From NCBI GenBank assembly GCA_002269645.1, contig NIVC01002815.1, forward strand, positions 25,673-89,672: DNA of 64,000 nt, in the 5' to 3' direction. The stretch comes from Macrostomum lignano (taxonomy: Eukaryota). Position 1 is the stretch's first letter, and every line of letters starts with the position of its first letter. The position numbers and the translations under genes were made by a program. The notes under the pieces are model-generated. The model ran no database searches. It had not been told where the DNA came from and was given only the letters and a program-made list of their open reading frames with translations. Below, in pieces: positions 9,001 to 51,797 of this stretch.

Positions 9001-12000
9001 TCCGATAAAACAACGGACAAGGGGATATTTTTAACTGTCAGGGGAGTAATAATTTTTAGCAATAAATTTGCTTCGTAGCTAGATTACAAAACAGATAAGG
9101 ACGTGCTTCCAAATGCATTCGACTGGAAGTATGCAAAATTAAGCATTTCTTAAAAAACAAAGCTGAAAGATACTGTTAAACATCTCAACGTTCTTGGGTG
9201 CTGTAAACAGGTAAGTTGCGGTCTAAAATTAAGTACAGTTTAAGTCAGAGTACTGAGAGCGCCAGATAAAGTGCCAGTTAGGCCAAAAGCCGATTTTTGT
9301 ACATTGCATCAGTCAGGGACTTTCTCTGACAAAGCTTTCTGGTGCATTTACAAAGACAAAGTTTTGACCGCAACCGGCCTCGAAGTGAGAAAACGGCTTT
9401 AAACTTCGGCCTGATTGGCACTTTATAAATCGAGTCTTGTTACTCAAGGTTGTCTTAGCCTATGCTGTGGCTTGCTCGCACAGTCTCGATGCCTAGCGGT
9501 TTGCTCATATTTGTTTCATAGCTAAGCATTCTGAACGGAAGGATACTAGCCGTTATCAGCCCATCTCCTTAAAACTGAATTCCCAAGAGTTGAGGAGCCG
9601 CTGGTCCTCCGGCATGCTTCTCAACTGAATTTGTGCGATAAAACCGACACGAGGTCTCGGAAAATGTGGGGATAAAAAGAAATTCAACCGCCGTCTTTTT
9701 CTATTGGAAGCGCATTTTACTGCCTTACTGTTTACACATCTAGCATATACCCTTTTTATCCATGCGACTCGCTTCTGCGCATGACTGAATGATAAAAAGT
9801 TCACAAATCGGATTCTGTCCTTGGGAAATCTAAGCACCGACCTTGACTATGCTCTCCGGAAATCAAATTTTATAGCTTTCATCAAAGTTCCTGGGGTCAT
9901 TTTTCCTGCTACTTTAACAATTACTTGGCATAGCCGTGGTTTTTTCTACGAACTCGTACTTCTAATGGTACGGCAAAAATAATGAACTGAGTGATTATGG
10001 TTGTTAGATGTAATAATTTGATATAGACTTTTATCTATGGCTTGACCGCCACTAGCATTACAGTACAACTTGAATGAGCGGTGCCTCGTTCTAAGGCCAC
10101 AATCAATAAAAGTGATATTGAGAGCTGCTCAACTGGAGCACTTAAGAAATTACCGAGTTAGCTAAAGGCTACATCAAAATTGGTGTTATAGTGTCTGTGC
10201 ATCCAGAACCAACACTGGTGACGAGGATGGCGACGATTCCAATCGAACCCCCGGAGACAGACGTGCCTGCCGAGGTCAGCAGATGGCTACAGCGATTCGA
10301 GGCTATAGCCAAAGTCAACAAGTGGAACGACGACGTGCTGAAGTATGCGTTCATAGCACAACTGGGAAAGAAGGCGTTCAACCTTCTGGCTGACGCTTCA
10401 CTGCCAGCAAAGCCAGAGGAAAAGACCTTCGATCAGCTGAAGACGCTACTAACAAACGAAACGAAAGCATCGAAGTCGGGACTGGCCTATAGATACGCTT
10501 TCCACCACATGAAGCAGGAAAGCGGAGAAGACACGTCGGCCTATGCTAGGAGACTTCGACAAGCCGCGGACAACTGTGAATTCACGGACCTAAACGACAG
10601 GTTGCGCGACCAGTTTGTGTTTGGCTTGTTGAACAAAGACATCGTGAGGAAACTGCTAAGTGAAAAACTCGCAGATCTCACCTGGGAGAGGGTGACGTCC
10701 GTGGCAAGCGCATGCGAAGCCGTAGCGCGTGGTGAAAAACAGATGAGCAGCAGCGAAATTTTATCGGTCAAGAGGGCGGATCGACCGCGTTTGCGGATCG
10801 ACAGAACGATCGCAAAGCGTGGCAGCCAACCGGGTACGGCAAGTGGAATCAACAAAGCCATCGCGACCAAACAAAATGTTTCTGCTGTGGCAAGGATGGA
10901 CACCGCAAGGACGTCTGCCAGCACCGTTCAAAGACCTGCCTGAATTGCGGAAAGACTGGCCATCTGAAAGCTGTGTGTAAGTCTAATACATCAAGACCTG
11001 CTCAAGGGTCAAGACAGACTGTCAAGGTGAGAGCGATCGAACCGCAGAAAGATTCTTCAGGACCTGTAGGAGCACAGGACAGCATCTTCTCCGTAAATGG
11101 CAGCTGTGAGGAGCCCAGCAGGCGCAGGATAACAAGGCTTCAGCTGGTCAATGGGGCCAATCTTCATATGATTATGGACACGGGATCCGTCTCATCATTT
11201 GTACCTCTAAAGGTGTATCAAGGCCTTCCGTTAAAATCCAATTTAAGACCGACGGCCCGACGATTTACAGCATACCAAGGAGATCCGGTGCGTGTTTTAG
11301 GAGAAGTTACTGTCAGAGTAGAGCGTGGCGGCGCAGTAGCAAACCTGCCATTGTTTGTCGTAGACCACAGAGATGTGGAGCCCATATATGGTTTGGACTG
11401 GATTGCAGAGCTGGAGCCGGAGCTTTATGTCGCCATAACCCAAGGTGGTAATGCTGACGCCACAGAAGAAAGGCAATCAAGTCGCATGTCTCCAGTCGAC
11501 ACCGTGAAGGCGTCACTATCGATCAGGCCAGGCGCAAAACCTGTTTTCTGCAAGCCAAGACCGATTCCATATGGTATTCAAGAAGACGTAAAGAACGAGC
11601 TACGAAGAATGGAATCTGAAGGACAGTTGGAGAAAGTGCAATCGAGCGAATGGGCCACGCCTATAGTGTGTGTCAGAAAGCAATCTGGAAGTATCAGGAT
11701 TTGTGGCGACTATAAGATAACACTGAACCCAGTCTTGAAAGACATGGTATCGACAACGCCATCGATAGATGAAGTGATGTCCAGATTGGGTCGAGCCCGG
11801 AAATTCTCCACGCTAGATCTCACAAATGCATACTTGCAGGTACCAGTCGACGCCGAGACAAGTCAGATACAAACTTGGAGCACTCCCTTTGGCCTGTTTC
11901 GTCCAACCGCATGGGCTTTTGGAGTAAAACAAGCACCCGCTATCTTCCAGTCACATATGGATAAACTCCTGCTAAACCTCGACGGCGTGATATCCTACCA

Positions 12001-15000
12001 GGACGATATCCTCATCTGGGGCGAAAGTCAGACTGATCACGACGAAAGGCTCAACACCGTAATGAGAATCCTGGAAAACAATGGACTTCGCATAAATGCT
12101 GACAAGTCTGTACTAAACAAGTCGTCAATACGATTCCTGGGCTACGAGATCAGTGCAGATGGAACTTGCCCTCTAAAGGAGAAAGTGGAAGCCATTGCCG
12201 GATTAAAAGAGCCAAGCGACCTCAAACAACTACAGGCATTCTTGGGAATGGTCGATTTCTATGGACGGTGCATTCCTAACTTGGCTACGTTAAAAGAGTC
12301 ATTGACCAATCTAACCAGGTCAGGTGTGCGATGGACCTGGGGAAGGCAAGAACAGAAGGCATTTAACACAATCAAGGAAAGATTGCTCAACGCCGGACTT
12401 CTAAAGTCATTCGATCCAGCTGACAATGTTATACTTACGACTGATGCATCACCGGTGGGACTGGGAGCCGTGTTGGAGCAGTCGTCCGGTCCTGTTCTAT
12501 TTATCTCCAAGACGTTGACACAGGCTGAGAGAAATTATGCACAGATCGAAAGAGAGGCGCTAGCCATAGTCTGGGCGGTTAAACGCCTCCACAAATATCT
12601 GCTAGGACGCAAGTTCGTGCTCAGGACGGACCATCAACCACTGAAATTTTTGTTCAACCCGGGAAAGGCCTTGTCTACGGTTGCTGCTGCTAGGCTACAG
12701 CGATGGGCGATCACACTCATGGAGTATGGTTACGTCATCGAGTATAAGCGTTCCGAGGAGATCCCTGTCGCTGATGCCCTATCTCGATTGAATAATAGTG
12801 CCGCGGAGAGCGAACAATTCGACGTCAACTCGATTCAGGACAGTCTACTTGATATACCAGTTGACAAGCAGCGGCTTAGGCGCACGTCAATGCTTGATCA
12901 GGAAATGCGACGACTGTTTGCGCTCGTCAAGCATGGCTGGACAGCCCGAGGAATCAAGGAGCTACCAACATACGCTCGAACTCGTGACGAACTGGTGATC
13001 GAGAACGGTCTTCTTTACAGAGGAATACGCCTGCTGATCCCGGAGGAGGAGCGACAAAGAGTTCTTCAACTATTGCACGACGGCCACATAGGCGCGGACA
13101 AGATGAAATCCATCGCCAGACAATGCGTATGGTGGCCGGGAATAGACGCTGATGTCACTAGGCATACCAAGCAATGCGTCGCTTGTCAGACAAATAAAGA
13201 CCATGGAGCATCAATCCAATGGGCATCTTGGCCAGAGGAAAGCGAAAAGTGGTGCCGTGTGCACGCAGACTACGCTGGACCGTTTAAGGGCAACAAGTAC
13301 CTGCTCGTAATAGTCGATGCCTACAGCAAATGGGCAGAATTACATGTTACGCAGTCAACTACATCGGCAGAAACTATCCGACGTTTCCGAAGAACGTTCT
13401 CGCAAGAAGGTGTTCCCGCAACATTGGTTACTGACAATGGTCCACAATTCACTTCAGTGGAGATGGAGGGCTGGCTCAAAGGAAACGGATGCAGACACGT
13501 GCTCACGCCTCCGTACCACCCACGATCAAACGGCCTTGCGGAAAGGTTTGTGAGAGACATAAAGAACCATGTGGCGGCATCAGGAGGCGAAGACGATCTA
13601 CAAACCAGTGTCGACCGCTTCCTTCTACAGTACAGGAACTCCCGTCACTCCACGACAGGAAGGGCACCTGCAGAGTTAATGCGAGGACATCTGCTTCGGA
13701 CGGCAACGTTGACCTTGGCCAAAGAACCGGTGTGGGTAAAGACATACAGGAACGAAACCGAGAAATGGAAGCCCGGTGAAATCGTTGCTAGAGAAGGTAA
13801 GAAAATTGTGGGCGTACAATTGGAAGACGGAAAACACGGCCGATATCATCTGGAGCAGACAAAGCCAAGGATTCCCGTTGAAACTAGCGAGCCTCAGGAG
13901 AGCTCACAGCAAGGTGTTGCTGACCAGAACACAAGTAACCCGATAGAAGAGCCTGGACAACCTGAAAGAGGTCATCGCTGCCAGCGCACGCGGAAGGCAC
14001 CCGACAGACTGAACTACTCAACTTTAGGAAGCCCGGATTGCGCGTGAACTGGAGTGAACTCGGACAGTTGCAGAAACTATCGGGAAGGAGTGTTAGATGT
14101 ATTAATTTGATATAGACTTTTATCTATGGCTTGACCGCCACTAGAATTACAGTACAACTTGAATGAGCGGTGCCTCGTTCTAAGGCCACAATCAATAAAA
14201 GTGATATTGAGAGCTGCTCAACTGGAGCACTTAAGAAATTACCGAGTTAGCTAAAGGCTACATCAAAATTGGTGTTATAGTGTCTGTGCATCCAGAACCA
14301 ACAATGGTTAAGACGTCATACTGGCTTATGTACTTTTGCTGAGAAGCCATTGGTCAACTGAAAATCTATGGTACAAAACTATTCTCCTCGTTTCGGTGTG
14401 CAAAGTAAAATATTGGCAAAGACAGTTTCAGAGCACATCGCAGTCTTTATGTAGCATTTCCCACTCAATTTGGTCCTGTGAGCAGTTACTTTAGTCCTGA
14501 ATTTTAAAAGCACACACATCAAGCATCTATCTTGATAATGCAACACAATGCGGAACAGTGCAACATAACAGAAGAGCCATCGTGCTGAATAGTCAGTTCC
14601 AAAAGTTACTCAACTCAGAGAATAGGTACGCCAGCGATGCATCGGTGGAGGTAGCGCATCGTTTTACGATGCTATCCTCCGAATTTTACTGCAGTTACCG
14701 CATCTGTCGCCTCTACAATTCTCCACTTCCCGGGGAGGGAAGCTCTTCGCTACCTTTAACTTCCGTTATCAAGCAAACATGGTAAGATTGACAAGACGTA
14801 CAGGCTTAGTGAGATACTTTTGAAAATGCTGAAACACCTTGGATACTGTGACTCTGTCTATTGACAATATTTAATGCCATTTAAATTTTCCAACAACTTA
14901 TCGAGTGGAATAGCGGGTATATTGTATCTGTCTCCATCCCGCAGCAATGCTCTCAGCCTGCTGGCTCGCTAAACAAGTGCGTCGGCTCCTTTCACTCCCA

Positions 15001-18000
15001 ACTGGTTTGTCGCTACGATCTGACTGATAAATTCTCGCCCAACAGTCACCGGTCGCAGACTTCTGCTGCCGCTGCCGCTGCTGCTTCCTCTGGCACTTCC
15101 GCTGGTACCGAAACCGGAAACTACCTTGACAGGAGCAACTATGATGGTAAGACTGCCTTTTAATGTTTGTATGCCATTTCTATCTGCTGCCTTTTTTGTT
15201 CTTTACTAGAAAGATCAGTACCTGATTGTGGTTGACATGCTATTGGATTTTTCTCTTTTTTGGCAAACTTTCGCTTTGATTTTCCTTGTCTACCTGCCTT
15301 CTTCGCCCATTGTGCAGTTGACTCGGCTTGCTTTTTAGCATCCGCGCTCACCAATAAGACATTGGCAAATAGAAGAAAACTAGCAATCTACGCCCCCCGT
15401 TGGGGAGCCAAAGAAATGCAATACACGTATTTTTAATAAGCTACATGTAGCCTTGAAATCTTAAAAAATCTCCTGTCAAAATTCTAACCCTAACCAAAAC
15501 CCTAAATTCAATATTTTGTCCATGAGTTTTTGCATGATCGATGCTTCTATGATTTTTGGCATGACGCTTCCATTGTTTTTGCATGACGCTTCCATTATTT
15601 TTGCATGATGCTTCCATGATAAACATTTTTAATAAGCTAAATGAGCCAAGTTATAAGCTACCCTAACCCTAACCCTAACCCGAATCTTAACGCAATAACC
15701 CTGAACCTAACCCTAAACCTAAACCCTAATACCAACCCTAACACTAACCCTACAGCCTGACATCTGCATAAGTTTGTGAAGAGCTAGTATTATTTTTTAG
15801 CTTAGTATCTTAGCGTTAGGGAGCCAAAAATACAGTACAAGTTTTGTAATAAACTACATGTAGCATCTCTTTGCAATATACCTCAGAAGTCCCTTGTAAG
15901 CCTTGAAATGTCAGTAATTCCCCCCACAAGCTTTAACAAATCAACTCCCCCCCTTGACATCTCAGCGATGCCCCAAATAAGCCTTGAAGTCTAAAAAAAT
16001 CTGTCAACCTTCTAACCCTAACCCTAGCCTAACCCTAACCCTAACCCTAGCCTAACCCTAACCCTAACCCTAGCCTAACCCTAACCCTAACCCTAACCTA
16101 ACCCTAAAGCATTGAAATTTCAGTAATTCTGAGTCATTATAGCACTACTACAGCGTTATAGCGATTCCCTGCAAGCCTCGACATCGTAGGGATTCCCAAA
16201 TGAATCTCTTAAATTCGACATGAAGCTTCTTTTATTTTTTACATTATGCTTTTTCTATCAGTGAGCCCTGAGGAGCCAACAAAAAATGTAATAAAAAGTT
16301 TTCATTAAACTACATGTAGCTTCTGACTTTAGCCTTGAAATATCATTTATACCCCCGTGAGCCTTGACATCTCAGCTATTCCCCCCGTAAGCCTTGACAT
16401 GTCAGCAATGGCCCCCATAAACCTTGAAATCTAAAAAATCCCCTGTTAACCTTGAAACCCGATAAAATATAACCCTCAACCCACACCTGACCTAAACCTA
16501 ACTTTAACCCAACCTAAAGCCTTGAAATCTCAGCAATTCTTCTCCCCTAAGCCTTGACATTTTGGTGATTCTTTCTTTAAGAATCACAGCACTATAACGA
16601 TTTCCACCAAGCTTTGACATCGTAGCAATTCCCAAATGAATCTTTTAACTTCGACATGACTTTTCTTTTATGTATACATAGTGCTACTTTTATTTTTTAC
16701 ATGACTTTTCTTCTATCAGCGCATCAGCTATCAGCCCCCCCGTGACGAGCCAACAAAGAATGCAATAAAAAAATGGAGTAAAGTACATGAACTTTGAAGT
16801 AGCTTCTGACTTTTGCTTTGACATCTCAGAAACCCCCCCCCCCGTAATCTCAGTTATTCTCTGAGAGCCTTTACGTCTCAGTTTTTCTCCCCAGCACAGC
16901 ATTATAGTTGCATTTAATTTTTACATGACGTTTCTTTTATTCTACCGTGACGCTTCTTAATTTTTTAAATGACACTTTCATTAGTTTTAAATGAGGCTTC
17001 TATGATTTTTTCTTGACGCTTCTATGATTTTTATATGACGTTTCTATGATTGTTTACATGACGCTTCTATGATTGTTTACATGACGCTTCTATGATTTTT
17101 TACATGGCGCTTCTATGATTGTTTTCATGACGCTTCTATGATTGTTTACATGACGCTTCTATGATTGTTTACATGACGCTTCTATGATTTTTTACATGAC
17201 GCTCTATGATTGTTTACATGACGCTTCTATGATTGTTTACATGACGCTTCTATGATTGTTTGCATGACGCTTCTATGATTTTTACATGACGCTTCTATGA
17301 TTTTTTCATGACGCTTCTATGATTTTTGCATGACGCTTCTATGATTATTACATGACGCTTTTAATATTTTTTCATGACGCTTCCATGATTTTTTCATGAC
17401 GCTTCTATGATTTTTTATGACGCTTCTATGATTTTTTATGACGCTATTTTGACTTTTACATGACGCTTCTATGATTGTTTACATGACGCTTCTATGATTT
17501 TTTAAATGACGCTACTATGATTGTTTGCATGACGCTTCTATGATTTTTACATGACGCTACTATGATTGTTTGCATGACGCTTCTATGATTTTTACATGAC
17601 GCTTCTATGATTTTTTCATGACGCTTCTATGATTTTTGCATGACGCTTCTATGATTATTACATGACGCTTTTATTATTTTTTCATGACGCTTCCATGATT
17701 TTTTCATGACGCTTCTATGATTTTTTATGACGCTTTTTTGACTTTTACATGACGCTTCTATGATTGTTTGCATGACGCTTCTATGATTGTTTACATGACG
17801 CTTCTATGATTTTTTCATGACGCTTCTATGATTTTTTACATGACGCTTCTATGATTGTTTACATGACGCTTCTATGATTTTTTTACATTACACTTCCATG
17901 ATTTTTATATAACGCTTTTACGATTTTTACATGGCGATTCTATGATTGTTTACATGACGCTTCTATGATTTTTTACATGACGCTTCTATGATTTTTTCAT

Positions 18001-21000
18001 GACGCTTCTATGATTTTTTACATGACGCTTCTATGATTGTTTACATGACGCTTCTATGATTGTATACATGACGCTTCTATGATTGTTTACATGACGCTTC
18101 TATGATTTTTTACATTACGCTTCTATGATTTTTATATAACGCTTTTACGATTTTTTACATGGCGCTTCTATGATTGTTTACATGACACTTCTATGATTTT
18201 TTACATGACGCTTCTTTTTAAAAAGTCTTTTAGTTTTCCTGACGTTGAAAAGCTTTAATTAAAAAAATTATACTCTATGAAAATTCGAACCATCGTCGCT
18301 GCATTTGGCAGTTCAGTTTGTTCACCTCTAGGCTAGCTCTCATCGTTTTGATAACATCAAATTTTGCACTTATATAATTCAACACTTTAAAATCCAAGCA
18401 TAGAGTAAATCACACGAAGCAGTTATGACATAATCAGTTTCTCAGTCAGTCAGTATCAGTTAACAATATGGTTACGCAATTTAAATCAAGTCTGGTGCTA
18501 CGCTTCCACACTGCATTTTCAATTCAAGTCGGAGTTACAATTCAGTTATGATGCAATCTATTTCAGAATCAGAATTCAACCAGTCAGTTTTTTCTCTAGC
18601 ATTCTTACAATGCATTTCAAGTCGAAAAGTTTGCTTGACCTTTGCAAAAAAGCATGTTTTTCGAATATTTAATCACTTTAACATGGAGCAATTTCTTAGC
18701 CAAGATGCATGTACCGTCACCGGAAAATTTCTGATCGAACAGTGCAAGTCTCATGAAAATCGGTCCAGCCATTTTTTCTCTAATCGATTGCGTACAAACA
18801 AACAAACAAGCAAGATTTTCATTTTTAGTATATACGAGGCCAACTCCTCCGCTGGAGGAGAAAGGGGAAGAACTCCCATCACCGGAATTCCATTCCCTGA
18901 AATCCACCAACTGAATCCCATCATCCAACTCCTCACCGCAAAACTGAACACCATGGAAATCCTCTCCGCGAAACAGAAATCCTCTCCGTGAAACTGAACT
19001 CCAAGGAAATCCTCTGCGTGAAACTAAAATCCATCAAAATTGTCTCCGTAAAACAGAAATACATCAAAATTCTCTCCACGAAACAGAAATCGTCTCCGGG
19101 AAACTGAAAACCATCGAAATCCTCTCCGCAAGACAGAAATCCTCTCCAAGAAACTGAAAACCATTGAAATTCCCTCCGTGAAACTGGATTCAATCGAAAT
19201 TTTCTCCGTCAAAGGGAATAAACTCCAAGGATTCAATGGTTAGGGTTAGGGTTAGGGTTATGGTTAGAGCTACACACAGCAGCGTGTTGAAAGGCGCCGA
19301 TAAAAAAATTGAACCAATTGAATCAGTTGAATGCGCAACCAATTTCATAGTCATTCAGTATCAGTCTCGGTAAAATTAGGAAAAAAAATTGCGCAATCTA
19401 AATCAACCCTCCAATACACAGCGACCGACCCCTTCCAATACGCAGTGAAGGTTAGAAATTCAACCCCCCCCCTAACTGTTGGGGTGTCGGTCGAACCCCC
19501 ATTGAACCCGTAAAATGAGTACAATCTTTGCAGAGAGTTAAAAGTATTGAAATATCGTCTTTGCTTTTGCTTTGCTTTTTGCTTTCATATTTAAAGCAAA
19601 CAACTTATATCCTCGAAGTCAGCATTGAAAGATCTTTCCAGCAATATAAGTCTCTTCTCTCAGAGTTCAAAACTCGAGGAACAGTTGGCGTTTGAAATAT
19701 CCCAATTTAAAGCATTGAACTATCGAGTGTACGCATACGTGCACTGCCTGCTAAAAAGGCTTGCAAGTTTATTCATTGAATTCCACTGCCGCCCCAGCAC
19801 CCTCAACACAGGGGGGTTTGGTTAAGTTCTCAGTGCACACAGTTGTGGCGCAATCGCTAAAAATTGATGTCAACCGGCCCAGCTTACACCCCTTCAGTTG
19901 AAAGAATACACTGCACAGATAGGCCGGCTGTTGTGGCGCAATCATTGCAAATTACGCAAGATGTTCATATTCCCCTATTGTTCTACGATTTCTGCTTTTT
20001 TAGGGATCTTAAAATTTGAAAATAAAAAATTTAAATAGCCCACTGCCATCCTCGGAAAATTTGCAGTTTTCCCATATAAGTTTCAACGCTGACTTGCAAG
20101 TCGTCTAGGAGGAGATGTGTATCACACAAACAGACAAACAACGCACCAACTTTAGTATTAAGACGAGTGGAACTCCTCCGTTGGAGGAGAAATCCGCTGA
20201 ATTGAAATCCCCGGAATCCCATGGTTGGAATGTTGAATCTGCAGAACTCCATATCGTAACCCTAACCCTAGCTCTTGGGCCAGCGAAATTGAGCTACTGA
20301 AACGATCGCCTGCCCCCGTTGATGCATATGCATTGCGCCATCGCTGTCGCAGCCCGGTTCTCACAAATGTACACTGCATTTAGCCGAATTTATTCATTTA
20401 TGCCGGCCTTGTTACTTGCAAGCGTACAGTAAAGATCTACAGTACAGTCTATAGCCCATGCACCTCCCCCAAATGCACAGGGAGAGTCTAGGCTTGTGCA
20501 TTGCACAGTCAGAATTGAAATTAATGAAACCCCTCCCCAGCCACTTAACGTTTTCACAATTGAAATCAAGAAATTTTCTATGACAAATTGCTCTGATGCA
20601 GTTGAGATTTCGGAACAGAAAATTATACCATTCTGTTCAGTTTTTCAAACTCTTTCCAACGGTGTGATTCACTTTTCTGTAGCTTGAAAATTAAAAGCAG
20701 AAATTAAGGTGCAAGTTTTCCCGTTTCTTACTTGCAGAGCGCAATGTACACTCTGTGATGAGTTGAAAAATCAAGCCATCCATTCTCGCGCAGTGTGCAC
20801 CTCCACCCCTTTTTAACACTGAGCAAGTAGGCCGCCAATTCTCAAGTGCCGGCGACCCTCCCCCAGCTGAAATGAAATACACTGCAGAGATAGGAGAAAA
20901 GTTGTGGCGCAACCATACAAAATAGCGTCAAGTGGGATGGGAAGTCCATGGAATGCGATATATAGACATCTGGCTGTCTGGTTTGTGCTGTTTTCTGCTT

Positions 21001-24012: not shown

Positions 24013-24558
24013 CCCTTCATGGAATTTTCACAGAACTACAGTGAGCTTGTCACACGGTTTTTACGAGCGTAATTTGCATTCATATCGAAACTCGCCTAAA
24101 TGTTGTCCCAAACTGAAATTCTTCCTGGACTTTGTGATTTAAACACTGTCCATTGATCTACCGGTCATTTTTGTAGATTTTATCCAGTACACTGCTCCAG
24201 CAGATGTTGCAGTTTTGTTTTTGATGCGTTGAAAAAATTAAGCCAGAGACAACAGAGAACTCTATTCAATATTGCGATGCTGCGCTTTTAAATTGTCAGG
24301 TTTGGGACAGCTGTGCCAGAATTCGCACAGCTCGGCGCTGGGGTGACTAACAAAGGTGGTTATCTCAGTTTTCCACATCAACTATAGCGGACTAGGGTGG
24401 CTGTGCGGGGGAAGGATAAGATGTACCTTTCTGTTTGCTAGTTTCAGTTGTAGAAAAGTAGTATATCAGTATTTTTGCAGATTAGTCTGTCTCAAGTCTC
24501 TCAGGCTCCACCCTTGGCTTCTAAATTAAAAAGTCCAGTTTTGCAGTTGTCAGTCCAG

Positions 24559-24939
24559 TCAGATCTTGCACTGGTAGTCGCAGTACTTCATAGACTCCCA
24601 GCAGGGGTTCTGGCAGCGCCAGTCGTTCTTCCCGCAGCCAAGTTCCTTCTTGCACAACTTGTAGTTCTCCTCGCAGCACTTGTTGCACCGCGCCTCTTCT
24701 GGGTGCTTCTCGTAGCAGTAGAGCTGCGGCTGCTCGGCTGAGAACGAGGAGCGCTTGTTGACTCCGCCGACTGCTCCGGCGATGGCGATTGCCATGAGCA
24801 GACTCAGACCACTGTGGGTGATGAGAAAAGCGTTAGTTTAGCTTTTACAGCCGTGTTATGGCTGACAATCTGTGTGCTAGATAAGCTGTCAAAATGGCAT
24901 TAGTGAAATTGGCACTTACAAAATCTGGTTGACGGACAT
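24559..24939 (-). CDS. Secreted 90-aa cysteine-rich peptide precursor (10 Cys), unknown family
   Basis: Exon 24939-24920 (ATG...TT|GTAAGT) and exon 24811-24559 (CCCACAG|), with a phase-2 match. Protein: MSVNQIFGLSLLMAIAIAGAVGG-VNKR-SSFSAEQPQLYCYEKHPEEARCNKCCEENYKLCKKELGCGKNDWRCQNPCWESMKYCDYQCKI. Confidence 0.8.
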
Positions 24940-25593: not shown

Positions 25594-27021
25594 TCATATC
25601 AGTTTAAAGCAGTAGTACTCGATGATCAGATAGCTCGTATATGGCGGGCACTTTGTCCCCAACAAACTCTCGTCGGCGGTGGCCTGGCAGCTCCGTTTGC
25701 CTTGACAGAGTCGTCGGATCTTATGCACAGCGTCGGGGTCCGTGCACCACTGCCTGAGGTACAGATGGCACTGCCACTGGTTCTGGCGCCTGCCATAGAA
25801 TACGTAGCTGACCACGACTTGGTGCCCCCTTGGACACCGTAGCTGAATAGTCTCTCCTGGGCAGAACAGAGCTTCTTGAATTTGGCCTGAGTTACATTAT
25901 ATGGGTGATCAGTACATGATACAAATTACTATGCATGTACACCCAGGAACACTAAACTGCTACCCTATCACACAATGAGTGATCTGGAGCTCTCTTGAAG
26001 GTCAGCTGCGTATTATACGCAGTCATCTCTGCTTAACTTTGCTGTATTCAATTAGCAAACGACTAAAAGGCCTTATAAATACAATAATACAAAAGTACTT
26101 AAATAACTATGCGCTATTATTTCATTGATAAATTAACCAATTTCATAAAGTACTTTTGATTGAATGGCAAAGTACGTACGACATAGCCTACAGTTGTGCA
26201 TGAAGAACTAAGTATTCGCAGGAGGGCTGCGGGCACCCTGCAGCGCAACGCCTTCGACGACATCATCCAACAACCAGCGTCGAGGCAATTCTGCCTATTC
26301 CCCTGCCTCCTGAGCACATGCAAGTTCTCCAATACTGTATGCAGACGTTCTCATACACGCTCACACAGGGTGTACAGCAGCCCCTACTTTCTAATCGCCA
26401 GGCATGTACACTCTCTGTGACCTTGGGGGTAGGACCTCATGGGTATGAATCGTACGACAACCCCTAGCACCATTATTGGTGCACAAGCCCGAATGAATGT
26501 AGCCGCCCACTAAATCAAACCAATTGGGTTGTGGGCCTGTGGCGCAAGCTGCTCTGCCAACCGCCCCTATACACTTGTTAAGTGGACTGGTTTGTGCGGC
26601 GAAAGTGCACAAACCGGCTTTAGTGCCCAGCGCGTTGATTGTACATCGCCGCCTGCCCCCCCCCCCTTGGGTGGCAGGGGTGTTTTTAAACCCCCGTCGC
26701 GCTCTACTGGCGGCTCACTTTGCCTTCTCGCAGTGAGTTCGTGTTTTTATTGCTTTTGTTGCTGGAAGCACTAACTGTTTATATTAAGCCGTTACCTGTT
26801 TACCCAACGTTGATTTTATTCAGATTGATGAAGTACAACTTCAAATACTTCAGATTGGATAAAGTACCTTAACTGCTACCGAACGTCGCGGAGTAGTCAT
26901 GACTCATATGCTGAAAACATGAGTAATGTATATATATAGCTAATCTTGTAAACTCAAGTTACTCACCAGCACTGAAGCCCGTTAGAAATGCTGAAATTGC
27001 AATAACTGCATGCAGCCTCAT
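25594..27021 (-). CDS. Secreted single-domain SUEL/rhamnose-binding-lectin-fold protein (115 aa)
   Basis: Signal-peptide exon 27021-26967 (MRLHAVIAISAFLTGFSA, G|GTGAGT) and exon 25886-25594, with a phase-1 match. Eight-Cys SUEL pattern with YGR, CQGKRSC and YLIIEYYC. Confidence 0.85.
26335..26570 (-). mobile_element. SINE-like element, family B, in lectin intron
   Basis: The reverse complement matches the 3' body of 7310-7460 and 39060-39280. Confidence 0.55.
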
Positions 27022-28806: not shown

Positions 28807-31800
28807 CTACATTTCTTCTGCACCAGCTACAGCAGCGGTTTCAACGTCATCCTGCTCAGATTTGTTGTCAGGCAATTTGGAGCTGACGTCACCCAGTTGA
28901 CAATTTTCCTCTGCATTTTCACTCGGCTGCTCAGCACAATTTCCGGTCGTGTTGCCGAAGCGGCGTTTAACTAGCAGATAGGCGGCCAGCAGCAGGGCGA
29001 AGTAAGGCAGCCTGGCCAGCATGGGGATGCCGTTAAACAGAATCCGAAGTCGCGTCCTGTCGTACAGCAGGCAGTTGCGTTCTCCAGCTGAGCCGCTGGT
29101 GGCTACCAGGCACGCGGATTCATAAATACGACCGCAGAAGCCGCCCATGATGGAGGCTGAAAGGTCATCAAGTGCTTTCAAGTGCTTTTGTTCAATTCAA
29201 TTTGATTCTTGTTCTTCATCGGAAGCCTAGGCGATTTTAGACACAGAATGGGGCTGAGGACGGGCCAGAATATTTGCGGTTCTAGGTTCTAGCGGGTCCT
29301 TGTTAAAGGGTACTTGTGCTTAGGCAAGTCACCTGTGTTGTAGAATGAATAAGCCAGTCAGTCTGCAAGTTTGTAGGCGAAACTCTCAAGCTCTCAAACT
29401 CTCCACGCTCTAACTTATGTATCATACGCTCGTATATTGTACTGCGATCGATAGCTAAGAGGTGTACACACAATTACGCACACGCATAGAGTAGCGATCG
29501 ACACAACAACCTGCTGTTGTCACATCGTACAGGACAAAACTTTGTTTGTGAGCGCGATTGTTAAGAAAAATGAATGCGAAATTTCTAACCAGTTGGTTGT
29601 AACTCTGACAATCAATGATGCGCCCAGACATCAATTGCGCTGGCGAATCCAGTGGGTTCCACTCGACATTTAGGGACATTAATTCCTGGGACCCTCTAAG
29701 CCATAGCCATAGGCAAGTCTCAATATGGAAGACTTGCACAATATGGTGTAAGTCTCAAAAATTTTCAAGTACCCGATGGGTTCAAGCATTTCACTACTCA
29801 TTAACATGCATCTGGGGTGCATGTTATTGCTTAGTTTTAGTCATTTGTGAAAAAATATTCATTGTCTATACCTCCAAAACCATATAGACAATCTACCAAT
29901 GATGCACGGACCATTGAGAAACAATGGTAGGTTGTGCATATGGTTTTGGTATATGGCTTCGCCACTCGTGAAGAATTAATCATTGTCTACCCCCAAAACT
30001 ATATGCACAGAAACATTGTCTCATGAATGTATGTTTAATAGCCTTGAATAATGATTTCGAAGCGTTGAATAACTAGCGTACGGCATGGGACATTGATGTT
30101 TGTCATGGAGACTTAAGAAAATAAGAAGAAAATAAAGCTTAGGACAGCTTTTTATGAGTTTTTGCATTACCCTCGTACTGTGCTTTTTTCACAAAAGTTT
30201 ATCCATAAAGTAAAAAAATATCGATAGGGTTGTATGTATGGAGCCTTCTATTCCTATAGTTTAGTTGAAAATATCTCAGCAATGCAATTAAGTATTACTA
30301 ATATGTTACCGGCAAGACTGAAGAACAGCGAGATAATCCCGACACCCATGGCCTCGTCGTCCTTTGAGTCTGTCACTCTAAAAATCGTACGGTTCCTCTT
30401 TTGATTATTGCCTAATAAATGCCACAGCATCAAATTTTTGCAACATGCGCACCTCATCACTAGTAAGAACCATGACACATACGACAGGCCGTCAACAAAA
30501 TGTGCGATGAATTTCAGCACGGAGAAGGCATAGACCATGTCGCATACACCGTAGCAACTGCCTGCCAGTGCAGTGCTGCTGACAAGGCCTTGTTCAGCGG
30601 AGTCCGTTAAACTGTAGTTTACAAATGCCTGTTCTAAACAGTTGCAGTTGCTAAACACCATCTCCGTAGGCTGGCATCGGAAATAAGTTATAATGAGTAA
30701 TTACTTAATAAAAGCAATTGATTAGCAGAAACAGATCTTCGATAATAACAAAAGAATTTGTACCTGGTGTGTCCCGTTCTCAGCAACTGCTACAGACATT
30801 GTCCCTGTACACCCAGCATGACACGGTGACATGTATAAGTTTCCATCAGCTCCGCACACTGGCAGATTGTTCAAGAGAGTGGCATCGCATCTGCACTTTG
30901 CAGCGCAGTCGGAGACGCTACTGACGTTGCTGTCCATTGTTTCTGTGAGGCTGTGACGGCGGTTATCGTCTTACGAGCTTTATGGAAATAAAGCCGTTTT
31001 GCACTTTTTGGCAAAAATGAATGCCGATGTACGAATCAACGAACGGTTAATGTTGCCTTTTTTATAAATACACATGGATATATGAAATGAGCCATAGGAT
31101 CAAAGTTCTAGACTCGATGATTTCACTAACTTTCCTTTAACGTACCTGGGATCATTCTTACGTGTACAGGTAGTGGGAACCAGTACCCTGCATGATTGAA
31201 AAATCTAGCGTGATTACGTTACACATCTACAGCGATGCATTGGTAACTTTGGATGGATACATCCAGCACAATACCTTGATATTTTAGCATGTGAATATAT
31301 CTGAGTGCACATCTTGTTCGGTGTTTTCTGAACGATGGCATTGAAATGCATTGACAAATCGATAGCACAAATAATCGAGATGAAAATATGTAATCTTACA
31401 CGTCCGTATTGATCCTTTCGGAGGGACAGTCCAGAAAGAATGCTGGCGAATTCAGTACGGTGGTCACCAGAAAGATACCACAGATGAGTCGCATCATTCC
31501 AACCACGTCAAGCTGCAAGCGCGACACCAAGTAGCCTCCAGCTAGTGTTGCCAGTGCGGTTGGCAGCGCATAGGTGATGCCAACGTACTGTCCTGCTGCC
31601 GAGGGCAATACGTTAAAGTAGTTCTCGTAGTACTTGACAATAAACAACACTTCGAGACCTGAACCGAGCAAACTGACCACGCAGGACAGCATGACCAGCA
31701 TGAGGATCGCATTGGTCATAGTGCGCTTCACGGCGAGTGACAAGTCGCGAAGACTGTGAAGGAATTTTGCGCAATTCCCGGCCCCGCGCGGCTGCGATTC

Positions 31801-32847
31801 GCACGACCTGTGGCGACTCATACGGCGCACTATATTTGCCTCGTTTAGCGGAGTCTCAGGATGAGAGGCGTCCGGATCGTCTTCAGCATCACAGGGATCG
31901 TCTTTCTGCTCATCCGGTCTTTCCGAGCAGCAGAACGCGTCTTCAAGTTGGCGGGGAAACAGCAGCATGGGAAAGCCAAGCAGGCTGGTAAGCAGGCCGA
32001 GACTGAGAAACCCCAGCCACCAGTTGCCAATCCACATGCTGTCGGATTCACGCAGACCAGATTCGCCAAATGATTCGTGCAGTGCTAAAAACTGCCCGAT
32101 CAAGTAATAGCCCAGCATTGGTGATATTGATCGAGCAGTGATGACCAGGCCGATGTAGATTGGCGACCGAGACGGGGTGGCTGAGTCCTCGACCATTGTG
32201 AATAGCACTGACCAAGAGGGGGCAGAAGCGGCGCCCTGAACGATCCCGACAATCATAAAGATGGCAAAGACTACTTTGCGGGCTTCAACTTGATTGGTCG
32301 CGGATGATTCCGATGTTGTTGAACCCAACCTCGGATACTTGTTTGACTCTGAGGATTTGTTGAACATGCCTGTTGAGTTCAAATCGAGGATTTTTCCACG
32401 GCACAATAGGTCGTTGTTTTCAGCAGCTAATGCTTTCAGCTGCTCGCTGTCGTTCTTCCAGCCGAGCTGTTGATCCGTGAGAGTCAAATAGCGTGCAATC
32501 TCGGCGTTCGAGTACTTCGGGCCGTAGATAAAATATGGAAGTGCGTAGGCAGCCGTGGACAGACCCATAACAACTGCGCCCAGGCCCAAAATGCGAGGCC
32601 TGTGACCTCGGTTGCCATAGAAACTAACTAGCGTCACAGTTGCAGCGAAGCCAATATCATTCGCCACTATGATTCGCCCCGTGTCCTCTGAATCGAAACC
32701 AAAGCGCCGCTCCAGAGTTGTCGTCATGCTCGATAAAAACACGTAGGATGCGTTGTAGGCGATGCCTGCTGAGATGCTGACTAACAGAAAGCACAGCAAC
32801 GACCGAATTTGTCCGGCGCTTCTGAAACTGCTTTCGATTTCTGACAT
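28807..32847 (-). CDS. SLCO: Organic anion transporting polypeptide (OATP/SLCO family), ~756 aa, 5 exons
   Basis: Exons 32847-31400, 30950-30764, 30670-30453, 30377-30310 and 29156-28807 have matching phases and total 2271 nt. Motifs: TTLERRFGFDSEDTG, SFYGNRGHRPR, WIGNWWLGF, Kazal-like PVCGADGNLYMSPCHAGC and CLLYD. Confidence 0.92.
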
Positions 32848-33515: not shown

Positions 33516-33760
<245 letters not shown>

Positions 33761-35204
33761 TCACAACATATACCTATACGTTATTCTTTTCAAAGCTGTC
33801 TACTCTTAGTAAGCTTAGTACTCATCAGCTTCTCAAAGAAAGCAATGAATTATTAAGCATTTATACGGAAGGCAAGACATAAAAGAAATACAGAAGAGGA
33901 TTAAAAAGTTGAGAAAGTTGAGACGCGTTCAAAAAGTTGATAGCAATAGGAGAATGGAAGTTAATTGAAAAGTCACTACGTATTTTTCGATTAGCAAGAT
34001 TGTCTGTTTTAGGTTTTAGGTGGAGATTCAGGGGCTGTTAAATCTACCCAGAAGAAACCTTGGCCTGTGACGCAACCTAACGAGCACGTGGCTAAAATTT
34101 AAGCAGATCAAACGTTCAGGTAGCTAATTAGTCAACTTACTGCAATAAATTATGCATGTCAGGTCATAAATGCAGCCCAGCAACTCTGCAACAATAGCAA
34201 GCAGGCTTTCATCGTTTCAGACCACGCCCATTTGTCCCACGAGCTCTAAATAGAATGGCACACCTTGCACGACAACATTCTCACGGGAACACATTTGAGT
34301 TCGGCTAATTTAGCTTAATCCTTTCGGATGAGAAAATTTTATGGCAAAACGCACAGCCTATCTGAGATAATTATAGCGTTGAGCGCATCATAGTCACAGT
34401 AAAAATGCAGTAGTCGAGTCTCACTGCCTTGCCTAACCAACGTATTACTAATTTTTACCTTGATATTACCTTGATAATAATAGAATGAATGCAGATTTTC
34501 CTGCCGAATACATGCGCAGTCAGGAGATTCCATCTCTAAATTTATTAGAGTAGATTGAGCCAACAATATGCGAATTTTGATGGAGCCATGAATAGATAGG
34601 AGAAACCTGCCCATTCAATATTGAAGTTTTGCTTCTGAAGTGTGCCTGTGTGTCAACTCTCTCACGACACAAAGCAAAATGAGTAAATGAACAGCGACCC
34701 ACCTCAGAATTCTGTCTAGAATTATGTAAAAATAAACATGCCAGTGAGAAGCTGCGATAGAGGCAGATAGTTGTGAAGCTCATGTAGTTAAGAGGGCGGA
34801 CTGTTGAGACAGAAATTTGAGCACAGATGTCGTGGGTCGTGGAAGAGTATTAGACACCCTCATTGGCAGTCATATTCAGGTGCTTTCATTGTTAAATTTC
34901 AGTTGTGGGCTTGTAATATTCGTTTTTTAATGCTCATTTAATCTATTGTGCATTGCACACACACTGCTCTAGTGAGTGCTCTACTGCCCTGTGCTTTTGT
35001 CCTCCGCATCAGTAAATTATTATAAGGACTGGCGTCGCGAGTCTGGGTGAGTTTTTTTATATACACTCCACTTGTTAGCAATAAAATCTGTTGAAAAAAG
35101 CGAGAACATACTGGCTCAGATTAATATCACTCTAGAGATGCAAACGGCGGGTAAGCAGCATTTTCATACCAAAAAATAAAGCTGAGCAAAATTAAATTAC
35201 TACA

Positions 35205-35532
35205 GACGGGGTCAAAACACCGCTATTAGAATGCAGGACCCCGATCGGAAAACTTGCATCATTACTATACTGACGGGGCCAGAACACCGCTATTAGAATG
35301 CAGAACCCCGATCGGAAAACTTGCATCATTACTATACTGACGGGGCCAGAACACCGCTATTAGAATGCAGGACCCCGATCGGAAAACTTGCATCATTACT
35401 ATACTGACGGGGCCAGAACACCGCTATTAGAATGCAGGACCCCGATCGGAAAACTTGCATCATTACTATACTGACGGGGCCAGAACACCGCTATTAGAAT
35501 GCAGAACCCGATCGGAAAACTTGCATCATTAC
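35205..35532. repeat. 67-bp tandem repeat, ~5 copies
   Basis: Units start at 35205, 35272, 35339, 35406 and 35473 and are nearly identical. Confidence 0.97.
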
Positions 35533-36178
35533 ATCAAGGAATCGTAAAGGACATTGTGCTACAAATAATAATATTGACACTCGTAAAGACAAATAAATTT
35601 ATAAGCAATCCATATAATCTTATCTCTCCTATTGAACTGTCCATGCTCAATTCTCCTAAACCCTCGCATTAACTCGCTCGAGTCGGCAGTCTTCGAAGAG
35701 ATCTATTACTCTAAATTATAAAATCACATAGCCATAAACTTTTTGCAATAGCCTCAGACATGAGTTGCGCCCGGAGCGCCTCTGAATGGCTGAAAAGCTG
35801 AGAGAAGATCGGAGAGGGAGAGAAGAGGGGCAGCCACTCAGGCGTTACAGTCCTGCCATTTCTATCTTTATCTGTCGAAGAAGTCAGACGGAGAAAGTAT
35901 AATAATAAGCCCAAGCAATGCGCAGACGAACAAGGGGCCGCAGAAAAAGGAAAGGACGCGCAGAGACCATTGGCCCAGAAGTTGATGGGCTTAGCTAATC
36001 AAATTACGACGTCTCCACTTTTGAAAGAAATTTCTCCTCATTAATTTATAGACGCGAAAGCCACCAAGCAGAGGATAAAGACCGCTTCTTAAGCCTGAGA
36101 AGAAGAGAACAAAACAGCCTCTTCTTACAGCAGCCAAGTGCAGCAGCAGAAAGCTTGGCTTCCAAAATTTCGATCGAA

Positions 36179-39100
36179 ATGAAAGCTTTTAGTGTTCGGT
36201 TGTTGTTGTTGTTGCTGCTTCTGCTGGCAGTATGGGAAAGCAGGGCATGCTACCTAAATTTGGCGATGAGCGGCAGCGGTAGCAGAGGCAGCGGCGTCTC
36301 AAAAAGTATCGAAGATTTGGCAGAGTCTTCTCCGATTGTGCTCACTGGACATGTGCTCAATACAACCGCGAGTGGCTCAGGCAGTGGCTCAAGGAGAAGC
36401 TACTCAGCCGAAATTCAAGTGCTCGAGGTGCTGAAGGGTAATGGATTGTTGCCCCTTAGCAACCGAAGCGCCTTTGATGATACCAATGATCACACAGTGG
36501 TGATTGACGAATACGGAGATCCAGTTAGCTGCTTGAGCGAAGTTTTTCAAGATGACTGGTTGATATTTTTCCTGTCAAAGTCGGGCTCCAGGCTCATGGC
36601 TTTTTATGCCAGACCATCTGCCGCGACAGCCCAGTTGACAGAATCGAATTTGGCAAGAGCTGCGACGGCCTTGGGTGAGCGATTCCGAGATCACTGCTTT
36701 ATTGCACAGTTGAAGCAAAGACTATATGTTAACTATAACTCATTATAGACTGCTGAGCGACATTTTACCCTTCATTAATGAGCTCAGTAAGAAAAAAACA
36801 TGGGAATTTTCTCCCCCACAATTCAGGCTGGTTCAGCTGGTCAAGTTGGACGGCCTGCAGCGGCAGCTGCGGCCTCGCTGGCATCAGACAGAGAGTCAGA
36901 AATTGCGCCGGACCGCCTTGCGACTACGGGGACGCCAAACAGACTCGTCAGTGCAATAGGTGGCCTTGCGAAGGTGAGAATTCCGCTCCGTTTGGACTCA
37001 CCGATTACAGGAATAAAGAGAAAATGTTTTACAGTAAAGACATTCTAAATGCAAACCTTGTTTTTAAAACCTCTAACAGGTAACCTTTGTTGCCATTGAT
37101 ATGGGAATCTAATATGGAGTTCGTCGGAGGGAATTTCCGGACCATGTTTCTCTAAACAGAAAATTTCATTATTCTACAGCAGGGGTCTTCAAACTCCGGC
37201 CCTTGGGCCACATGCGGCTGGCAAAGCGTCTCTGGTCCTTTGAAACTGCACGGATAACAATCCGCTGCCATCATAAGGCTTGTGTCTCTATCCGTGCTCA
37301 TCTCAGATCTCAGATCTCAGAATCTCAGCTTTCCAGTAAAGTCGCCTCTTTTCGCTTTTCTTCTCTCTCCCCTGCTATTCTTCTTTCCTCTCTCCTCTTC
37401 TCTCCGCTCCTCTTCTCTCTTCAGTACTCAGTCCTCCTTTTCTCTCATCTCTCTTCTCTAATCTTCTCTCCTTTCTTTCCTATATTCTCTTCTATTTAAT
37501 ATCTCGTCTCGTCTCGTCTCCTCTCATTTATTCTCTCGCCTCTCCTTTCTCCTTTCTCTCCTCTCTCTTCTTTATTCCTTCTCTGTCTGGCCAACAGTCA
37601 TGCTCTGGGTTTTCGATCTGGTCCTTGAGGTTAAAAAGTTTGCCGACCCAAAGCTCTACAGTATTGGGTTTCCAGCCTATATGCTCGCAGCTGTTGGAAA
37701 GAAAAAGTATATAATATAGCTCGCATAGTTACAAATACAATACAATATATTGTAATATTTAATACATGTTCAAAGGACAAAAGTCTAGCTCCACGCAAAA
37801 TTCTAAAAAATTAAAATTCTGAAAATTTTCTTTCAACTTTCGGTATTCCCACAAAAATTGGGCAGTCAACATTAAAAAATTAAATTCCAAAATTCAAACA
37901 AAAAACCGCCTTGAAGACCAAGATATCAAGCACCCATGCCTCCATGGGCTGAAACAGATTTTTAATTTATTAAGAGCCAAAGACATTTGGCCTTCAGGAC
38001 GTCCATATTGTCTTATTTTAAACAGAAAAACCAAACTCAACCTTTTCGTTGGATTTGCCTGTAGAAAAAGGTTTTATAGGTAACCTGCTGGTTGTTGTGT
38101 TTGCTGTACGCTCGTAGTGGTTCCTTTCAGAGTCAAAGTCGGACCACTGCATTCCTATACTCAAAACTGAAAATGAGACAAAAATGTAGAACTGAATTGA
38201 AGAAACAATCTGTTCTACTGCATATAAAATTCGTAGCATATTAACTTTAATTTTTATTTTGACAGCTTAATTAAATTTGTCAATGGCAGCAATAGAAAAG
38301 TGAAGGTTTAAAATTCTGGATTTTCAGCCATGCGACCAGTTAAGACAGAAGTTCTCGGTGAACAGCTGAATGCTAAAAATACAAGCAATGAGTCAATTGC
38401 CATTCCAATCGATAATCAACGCATCGAAAAATTCTCCAAGGAGACGGCTCTGGCATTGATGATATCTCCGATTTTGTCTGGTATTCGAGTCGCCATGGAA
38501 ACTGTTGCTGAAGATCACGTCTCAGTCCTCACCATGACGTCTGCCTCGAGCATGTGGAGAGATATTTCAACGGCTCCATCAGTTGCAATTTATTTGCGAA
38601 TAATTGCAAATGAAAGCGAAGGCAGCTTTGCTGAATTCTCAATCGAATGCCTGTCCTCTGGTAGCGTGCCAGTTCCCGGTGCTGGTTCGAAGTTCATTTT
38701 GACACCTAGAAAGGTACGTTTTAAACGATAACTGGTTTGCATATACTAATGAGAGTTGAATACAAAATAACAAATAAGCAAAATAACTGCAGGCTCTTCT
38801 AAGTGCGAATTTTGTGCCATGGTCCGAGGCAACAGACTGTTCCGAGGAACAAAAAGTGGTAGGTCATCGATTTGAATTCTTGCGTTTTGACAGAGAAAAA
38901 TATTATAATTGAAGTTCCAATATGCATTTGCAGGGGCATGAAAGGAGTACATGTATGCCTGTATTTATTAACAGCTTCGATATTTAATTTATCTTGACAA
39001 TCAGCTGTCTCGTTGCAATGACAGTTTCTAATGCAGAATAAACGTTAATAACGGGGGGGGGGCGCAGCCTGCGGTCTAACGCGGCGCGCTCCTATGTGCT

Positions 39101-51299: not shown

Positions 51300-51797
51300 A
51301 ATTTATTTGCACCACGGTGCAGATAAATGCCGCTACCTCCTCGTGGTGAGAGCGGAGAGCCGCGCTTAACTGCTGCGGCGGCCAAATGCGGCAGGACCAA
51401 GCGAGGGCAGCGGAGCGCGCGTCGGCGAGTCGAACGCCGTCGCGAGCAAAACTGGCGAGGTCGGCAACGTGGCGCCGCCCGCCGAGCTGCTGCTGCGCTG
51501 GCCCAATTGGATCTTCCGGGTGGCGCCGGGGACCATGAGGCTCACCAGCACAGAGCCCCAGCCGTACCAGAGGGCACGCTTCGGGTCGGGACGCTGAACT
51601 GCCGCACTCTCAAGGCCACATGGCGGAGAGGGCTGCTGGCGAGGCTAGCGCTCGACCTCAGCTGTGATGTCATCGCACTACAGGAGGTGTCTATCAGAGC
51701 CGACCCCAGACTTCACTGTGAGGACCTGGGTGCCGGTTGGACACTCTGGTACACCTCAGCGGATGAGCGAGGCCGTGGAGGAGTTGGAGCGCTGATC
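51300..51797 (+). mobile_element. RTE-like LINE 5' fragment (APE endonuclease N-terminus), 3'-truncated
   Basis: LRVGTLNCRTL..DVIALQEV..GWTLWYTSADERGRGGVGALI, then an abrupt switch to AT-rich DNA. Confidence 0.8.

Follow-up and report, generated by a model that had tools for sequence, protein, structure and literature searches.

Mlig024245, a two-exon gene of Macrostomum lignano for a putative secreted ten-cysteine helical mini-protein

Several groups of small proteins are built from helices that carry closely spaced cysteines. In plant alpha-hairpinins and scorpion CS-alpha/alpha kappa-toxins, antiparallel helices each bear a CX3C motif, and this twin-CX3C arrangement gives ladder-like inter-helix disulfides from four cysteines (two disulfides) within approximately 25 to 40 residues. 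Twin-CX3C and twin-CX9C motifs with four cysteines are likewise the mark of the small Tim and CHCH proteins of the mitochondrial intermembrane space (IMS). A longer framework, C-C-CC-C-C-C-C-C-C, is known in tarantula venom, where it occurs in the HWTX-XIV group and in SF8 of P. verdolaga, with mature lengths of 67 to 88 amino acids (PMC4065081, PMC6784019). Here, we describe Mlig024245, a gene of the free-living flatworm M. lignano that lies on the minus strand of a 64,000-nucleotide stretch of contig NIVC01002815.1 (assembly GCA_002269645.1; positions 25,673 to 89,672), referred to below as the window. Mlig024245 is read as a transcribed two-exon gene for a secreted, disulfide-locked helical mini-protein acting as an extracellular ligand or effector, a reading to which a probability of roughly 0.7 is given.

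Gene structure and deposited annotation

The original prediction had placed a two-exon gene at this locus, and both its coordinates and its exon structure were recovered on the minus strand (Table 1). The reading frame opens with the ATG at 24939, and no further ATG was found in the 325 nt upstream of it. Exon 1 ends at the donor ATTTT/GTAAGT, and the 3' end of the intron consists of a pyrimidine-rich tract followed by CACAG. Once spliced, the coding sequence of 273 nt translates into a protein of 90 amino acids, MSVNQIFGLSLLMAIAIAGAVGGVNKRSSFSAEQPQLYCYEKHPEEARCNKCCEENYKLCKKELGCGKNDWRCQNPCWESMKYCDYQCKI. In a mechanical list of open reading frames (ORFs), the locus was represented only by a 78-amino-acid ORF (24559 to 24795) that opens with the internal Met13; the list had thus indeed missed the gene as an intact frame. 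A canonical AATAAA was not found downstream of exon 2.

Table 1. Features of the Mlig024245 locus and of the remainder of the window
Feature	Position	Strand	Remarks
Exon 1, coding part	24939-24920	minus	20 nt: ATG + 17 nt (M S V N Q I + first two bases of F7)
Intron	24919-24812	minus	108 nt, phase 2, GT..AG (GTAAGT ... CACCCACAG)
Exon 2, coding part	24811-24559	minus	253 nt, residues 7-90 + TGA at 24561-24559
Predicted signal peptide, exon 2 part	24811-24763	minus	residues 8-23 (Kyte-Doolittle profile, -3/-1 rule)
Dibasic K26-R27	24756-24751	minus	present in sequence
Ten-cysteine domain	24717-24568	minus	C39 to C88, predicted three helices
Most conserved segment	24603-24562	minus	residues 77-90, CWESMKYCDYQCKI
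Probable 3' untranslated region	24558-24378	minus	block identical in diverged copies L001 and L002
SUEL/rhamnose-binding lectin gene	25594-27021	minus	intact, two exons, small secreted; PF02140 at 25594-25893, E=1.4e-15
OATP/SLCO organic-anion transporter exons	30254-32847	minus	ORF 31396-32847 matches PF03137, E=2.4e-79
Ty3/gypsy-type long terminal repeat (LTR) retrotransposon	10191-14047	plus	gag-like 250 amino acids + pol 1024 amino acids (protease, reverse transcriptase, RNase H, integrase)
Mobile-element-like ORFs	48536-49180 and 51327-51818	plus	gag-like ORF; endonuclease-like N-terminus
Leishmanolysin-like (peptidase M8) exons	54812-55609 and 56372-56770	minus	PF01457, E=9e-15 and E=4.9e-13
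ORF with signal-peptide-like start + agrin NtA domain	36155-36748	plus	PF03146, E=2.1e-9
Tandem array	16918-18215		23-nt unit x58
Tandem array	41170-41696		19-nt unit x27
Tandem array	61276-62423		31/62-nt unit x18
Tandem array	35201-35532		67-nt unit x5
Tandem array	33577-33761		(TAG)n x61

Using exact-sequence look-up in GenBank and UniProt, the identical 90-amino-acid protein was found deposited as 'hypothetical protein BOX15_Mlig024245g2/g3 [Macrostomum lignano]' (PAA55050.1, PAA55054.1, PAA91690.1, and A0A267E0I3), encoded in near-identical copies on three contigs of GCA_002269645.1. One of these contigs is NIVC01002815.1, with which the window agrees base for base over 12.4 kb. The gene is therefore already annotated publicly, yet uncharacterised: the claim that the peptide was uncharacterised held, and any novelty of the gene as an unannotated one is removed by the three GenBank entries. 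Full-text literature searches with the gene, protein, and UniProt identifiers returned no mention. The identifiers were also absent from the supplementary tables of the M. lignano papers searched, an absence that is not informative given the partial coverage of such tables.

The GenBank models of M. lignano were built from RNA-seq, using StringTie/TACO together with a de novo transcriptome and ORFs from TransDecoder, and not ab initio (PMC5730564). A deposited two-exon coding sequence thus implies an assembled spliced transcript, and a spliced Mlig024245 transcript probably exists. Absence of such a transcript, named at the outset as the outcome that would overturn the gene, is spoken against by this RNA-seq-built model, with the junction taken from the deposited models.

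Coding evidence

The composition of the locus follows the proposed exons. The GC content at codon positions 1, 2, and 3 was 0.46, 0.41, and 0.84, respectively, against 0.42 in the intron and in both flanks, and that of the coding sequence as a whole was 0.57. Codon choice is one-sided, with TGC used for all 10 Cys, AAG for all nine Lys, AAC for all six Asn, and TAC for all five Tyr codons; bias of this kind suggests high expression, as might be expected of a gland product. The probability of drawing at least 10 Cys among 50 random codons is approximately 4e-6. The three genomic copies do not differ in exon 2. Between copies L001 and L002, which differ at 13 positions per kb, no difference falls within the 434 nt made up of exon 2 and the 3' block (P ~6e-4), and both differences in exon 1 relative to copy L001 are synonymous third-position changes.

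Two further open frames overlap exon 2. On the minus strand, one further frame is free of stops between 24811 and 24521, and the plus strand carries an 88-codon ORF across the exon (24475 to 24741). As neither is conserved and the composition is rich in GC at third codon positions (GC3), both are compositional by-products. A search against Rfam gave no match at the locus.

It could be argued that the open frame is fortuitous or belongs to a decaying pseudogene, as the protein is very short, is without homologues outside the species, and shares its second exon with the frames just described. However, the GC3 value of 0.84 is confined to the cysteine frame, the enrichment in Cys is far beyond chance, three intact copies carry no change in exon 2, the annotation is transcript based, and the paralogue described below retains both the 10 cysteines and the gene structure. 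A nonfunctional origin is effectively refuted by these observations.

A paralogue and the extent of the family

The cysteines of the precursor lie at residues 39, 49, 52, 53, 60, 66, 73, 77, 84, and 88, giving spacings of 9-2-0-6-5-6-3-6-3 that match exactly those first reported. To identify relatives, the 90-amino-acid protein was used as a query in an exhaustive phmmer search of 1.84 billion representative proteins. The matches were a 354-amino-acid chimeric model that includes the same exon (P0004, discussed below), BOX15_Mlig017896 from M. lignano (P0005; library-wide E=5.8e-5), and a metagenome protein (P0006). A word-indexed protein search with the single 90-amino-acid query gave no match, a two-sequence profile run against a 5.8-billion-sequence index returned nothing beyond the paralogue (E=3e-49), and a family profile run against metagenome contigs yielded no confirmed relative. 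BOX15_Mlig017896, which is present in several copies (PAA84244.1 / PAA84373.1, A0A267GFV7), is the sole detectable true relative, and, as judged from these searches, Mlig024245 and Mlig017896 constitute a ten-cysteine family so far known only from M. lignano.

The two proteins share 32% identity, with all 10 cysteines aligned, and identity is concentrated at the C terminus, where 11 of the 14 residues of the most conserved segment are the same (CWERMKYCDFQCGI in the paralogue). This segment gives the near-invariant motif CWE(S/R)MKYCD(Y/F)QC(K/G)I; in the two-sequence alignment, W78, E79, M81, K82, Y83, D85, Q87, and I90 are invariant in addition to the cysteines. Mlig017896 also has an N-terminal signal peptide, with a 13-residue hydrophobic region (h-region) and a classic VEA/SP cleavage site. 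Its gene (L004) comprises a 14-nt exon 1 (ATGTCTGGACATTA/GTAAGT), a 552-nt phase-2 intron within the signal peptide, and one further exon that encodes the remainder of the protein. The occurrence of the same micro-exon layout in the paralogue provides strong support for the proposed exon 1 of Mlig024245.

The paralogue, which is equally uncharacterised, differs from Mlig024245 in carrying insertions of two and four residues in the C60-C66 and C66-C73 loops, respectively, in having a longer, Gln/Pro-rich region ahead of the cysteines without a KR pair, and in its isoelectric point (pI) of 8.4; its genomic neighbour is a P450 gene instead of a SUEL lectin gene. Two residues differ between paralogue copies P0005 and P0007, both of them in the C66-C73 loop.

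The metagenome match was set aside as a relative. This 147-amino-acid protein (P0006; phmmer E=6e-5) is encoded at positions 616 to 1059 of a 1.5-kb contig (L005; JGI metagenome 3300028647) and carries the pattern C-x5-GCGxxx[FW]RCxN..W..C[DN] twice, whereas it occurs once in the flatworm peptide. It is without the CC doublet or the CX3C pairs, matches the paralogue poorly, and is accompanied by an ORF that resembles a bacterial Cys-rich lipoprotein. The likeness is probably convergent or due to chance; otherwise, it may mark a very distant link.

The N-terminal region and processing of the precursor

The hydrophobic N-terminal signal reported for the peptide was found to be signal-peptide-like on a Kyte-Doolittle profile and by the -3/-1 rule. 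A predicted 12-residue h-region, IFGLSLLMAIAI, is followed by the small-residue c-region AGAVGG, within which the -3/-1 rule of thumb offers candidate cleavage sites after A20, G22, or G23. Secretion via this signal peptide is likely. Retention of the hydrophobic segment as an uncleaved signal anchor would instead yield a small type II membrane protein with the Cys domain exposed at the cell surface or within the lumen of an organelle. Such an arrangement would suit the approximately 19-residue hydrophobic run from I6 to V24, an n-region without a basic residue, and the K26-R27 pair on the C-terminal flank. However, the terminal AGAVGG has the look of a c-region and offers several -3/-1 sites, and a shorter h-region with VEA/SP is seen in the paralogue. 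In addition, with positive charge on its C-terminal side, an anchor would leave the Cys domain facing the cytosol, a location that does not allow for five disulfides. A signal anchor is therefore unlikely.

The dibasic pair had been proposed as a propeptide cleavage site. The KR is present, at residues 26 and 27, and the propeptide role was not upheld: the pair lies only three to seven residues past the candidate signal cleavage sites, and paralogue P0005 has no dibasic site ahead of its Cys domain. It is thus not a conserved processing site and is probably incidental, not a prohormone site; cleavage there, if any, would remove a few residues only.

The mature peptide is strongly hydrophilic (grand average of hydropathy [GRAVY], -1.2) and near neutral, with a pI of 6.5 and a net charge of -0.5 when taken from after the KR, or a pI of 8.1 and a charge of +1.7 with the KR retained. 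These values bear on whether the product could be a peptide with an antimicrobial or defensive action in the epidermis, gut, or mucus. A small, secreted, disulfide-rich scaffold predicted to be stable would be suited to that purpose, and the paralogue is mildly basic. Near neutrality and hydrophilicity nevertheless speak against a classical cationic membrane-active antimicrobial peptide, and no Pfam match to the defensin, macin, saposin, or other antimicrobial families was obtained, leaving an antimicrobial function rather unlikely.

Predicted fold and comparison with described scaffolds

Structure was predicted using AlphaFold2 on the two-sequence alignment, and the two resulting models were compared with the PDB and BFVD using Foldseek, as had been recommended when the peptide was first noted. 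The full-length model is all-helical with a mean predicted local distance difference test (pLDDT) score of 66; for the 63-residue mature domain, the pLDDT was 74.5 and the predicted template modelling (pTM) score was 0.59. The mature model contains three helices, at residues 8-15, 19-37, and 44-60, which correspond to precursor residues 35-42, 46-64, and 71-87. In the Foldseek comparison, nothing was found below E=1 in either database, and only generic helical hairpins appeared at E>3.

If this model is broadly right, C49, C53, and C60 (i, i+4, i+11) would share one face of helix 2 and C73, C77, C84, and C88 (i, i+4, i+11, i+15) one face of helix 3. Read most simply, this periodicity would give an antiparallel helical hairpin held together by at least three disulfides, the remaining links being made by C39 in helix 1, C52, and the loop residue C66. 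A disulfide-stapled hairpin formed by the two C-terminal CX3C motifs had been suggested earlier. The helical architecture is supported by the AlphaFold2 models; the pairing of these two motifs with each other is not, as both lie on the same helix in the better model. Likelier partners would be C49-X3-C53 of helix 2 with C73-X3-C77 or C84-X3-C88 of helix 3.

Sequence searches placed neither protein in a characterised family. No Pfam-A family was matched at E<=10 by the precursor or the mature peptide, the paralogue gave noise only, a PDB sequence search found no match, and the best result of a PDB profile search was ribosomal eL42 at E=0.5. Together with the Foldseek result, this agrees with the earlier view that the peptide matches no described family. 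ShK, Kunitz, knottin, defensin, and macin, from which it had been set apart, appear excluded as far as the tools used can test, given the empty Pfam search, the all-helical model, and the absence of a PDB fold match. Characteristic of these families is a framework of six to eight cysteines, combined in all but ShK with a beta-rich fold.

The alpha-hairpinins and CS-alpha/alpha kappa-toxins resemble Mlig024245 in their antiparallel CX3C helices, which here are predicted only and would be helices 2 and 3. They differ from Mlig024245, which has 10 cysteines including a CC doublet, a further predicted helix at the N terminus, and a pair of CX3C motifs on a single helix; no twin-CX3C hairpin peptide was matched by sequence or by Foldseek in the PDB or BFVD. 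With the small Tim and CHCH proteins, Mlig024245 shares one CX9C (C39-C49) and three CX3C motifs in predicted helices, and, among the Foldseek matches to the full-length model, a complex I accessory subunit ranked first, at the noise level (E=3.7). In contrast to those proteins, it has a hydrophobic N-terminal signal and 10 cysteines in 50 residues rather than four; with no match to Pfam zf-Tim10_DDP or CHCH at E<=10 and the signal present, a mitochondrial IMS identity was rejected within the reach of the tools used. Compared by framework string alone, the HWTX-XIV and SF8 toxins, tarantula groups being the sole result of a search with that string, agree with Mlig024245 in how single and double cysteines follow one another and have a similar mature length. 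As no sequence similarity to them was seen in any search and the flatworm model is all-helical, kinship with the tarantula toxins was dismissed as a coincidence of notation.

The neighbouring lectin gene and fused database models

Upstream of the peptide gene, at a distance of 655 bp and in the same orientation, is a SUEL/rhamnose-binding lectin gene, a pairing also found in copy L001; exons of an OATP/SLCO transporter lie beyond the lectin gene (Table 1). Two UniProt entries named 'SUEL-type lectin domain-containing protein', A0A1I8J989 (P0003) and A0A1I8G1Y5 (P0004), splice exons of the lectin, and even of the OATP gene, onto the acceptor at 24812; the ORF at 30254 to 30661 supplies the N-terminal part of P0004. 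Both entries appear to be chimeras that merge the peptide gene with its neighbours, and the lectin name attached to the locus arises from these fused models. A SUEL lectin identity for the peptide itself was likewise rejected within the reach of these tools, as PF02140 matches only the separate upstream gene.

The fused models raise the question of whether the ten-cysteine exon encodes the C terminus of a lectin or OATP-lectin fusion, or else belongs to a downstream operon gene joined to a spliced leader (SL) at the 24812 acceptor. Two older models that join upstream exons to exactly this acceptor, and the proximity of the lectin gene, would accord with either, and in M. lignano both SL trans-splicing and operons with genes within 1 kb are frequent (PMC8629364). 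Against this, the transcript-based annotation separates the lectin (Mlig004957) from Mlig024245, which has its own first exon, and the paralogue, which has no lectin gene beside it, likewise starts with a micro-exon of its own. For a fusion, the donor used by P0003 reads AT/GTGAAT in L001 but ATATGA in the window copy, and the h-region would end up buried inside the fused protein. For trans-splicing, the acceptor CCACAG departs from the reported [T/C]TNCAG motif (PMC8629364), and the ATG at the end of the SL would not be in register with the cysteine frame. Both arrangements are thus very unlikely, and Mlig024245 is best regarded as a gene with its own first exon; operon-like co-expression with the lectin is possible.

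Probable role

On the favoured reading, that of a secreted helical mini-protein, the N-terminal signal peptide of the 90-amino-acid precursor would be cleaved at approximately residues 20 to 23, releasing a hydrophilic, near-neutral domain of 63 to 70 amino acids. Its 10 invariant cysteines could then form up to five disulfides that lock a three-helix arrangement, with helices 2 and 3 zipped into an antiparallel hairpin through cysteines on one face of each. The product would be a stable extracellular binding module, a ligand or effector from a secretory cell type, in which the invariant C-terminal CWE-MKYCD-QC segment may belong to the core or make up the binding surface, with variability in the C66-C73 loop. 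At 7-8 kDa, the domain is too small and too rich in cysteine for an enzyme.

Several points weigh against this reading. The splice junction rests on deposited models rather than on reads. The n-region without a basic residue and the KR following the hydrophobic stretch could favour an uncleaved anchor. The fold model comes from a two-sequence alignment and is of moderate confidence, with the disulfide pairing derived from helical periodicity alone. Lastly, the extracellular ligand or effector role, the most likely one, is a generic proposal. Toxin, antimicrobial, pheromone, and seminal-fluid functions, put forward when the peptide was first noted, are candidates only.

Within this reading, a sub-case can be considered in which the peptide is a fast-evolving reproductive or gland secretion, for example a prostate seminal-fluid protein, that acts on the mate or the environment. 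M. lignano reportedly has many unannotated prostate-limited secreted transcripts. None of the databases searched yielded a family member from outside M. lignano, and, apart from the cysteines, the paralogues have diverged rapidly. High expression is suggested by the strong codon bias, and the gene adjoins that of a small secreted SUEL lectin on the same strand. The restriction to one species may, however, simply reflect a lack of other Macrostomum proteomes in the databases, and the gene identifiers were not among the supplementary tables already mentioned, uninformative as that is. A reproductive or gland function is accordingly proposed only tentatively.

It is doubtful, though conceivable, that the domain represents an undescribed five-disulfide all-alpha fold, a hairpin with three or four inter-helix disulfides and a capping helix, combined with a specific extracellular bioactivity such as that of a seminal-fluid or pheromone-like signal or of a channel- or receptor-binding effector. 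If true, this would be a new scaffold class of stable helical mini-proteins. Should the architecture alone be right, a compact five-disulfide helical scaffold without a Pfam or PDB counterpart would be of relevance to structural biology and peptide engineering. Lineage-restricted secreted proteins of M. lignano, a transgenic flatworm model, are also relevant to sexual conflict, adhesion, and secretory cell types. Orphan Cys-rich secreted peptides are very common in invertebrate genomes, and nothing here indicates an unusual mechanism or resolves a standing question. Mlig024245 is most suitably classed among the lineage-restricted, disulfide-rich secreted mini-proteins, a familiar group to which it adds a new cysteine framework, and its value is mostly that of a well-defined candidate for studies of expression and structure.

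Other features of the window

The remainder of the window contains transporter and peptidase exons, an ORF with an agrin NtA domain, mobile elements, and tandem arrays (Table 1). The two mobile-element-like ORFs gave no Pfam match at E<=0.001; the gag-like one has the motif CEF(S/T)DL..RDQ in common with the gag of the Ty3/gypsy-type retrotransposon at 10191. The retrotransposon itself corresponds to a block that is rich in GC and has a positive AT skew. Among the tandem arrays, the 19-nt repeat gives rise to long artefactual ORFs on either strand and to a spike in GC skew of +0.39.

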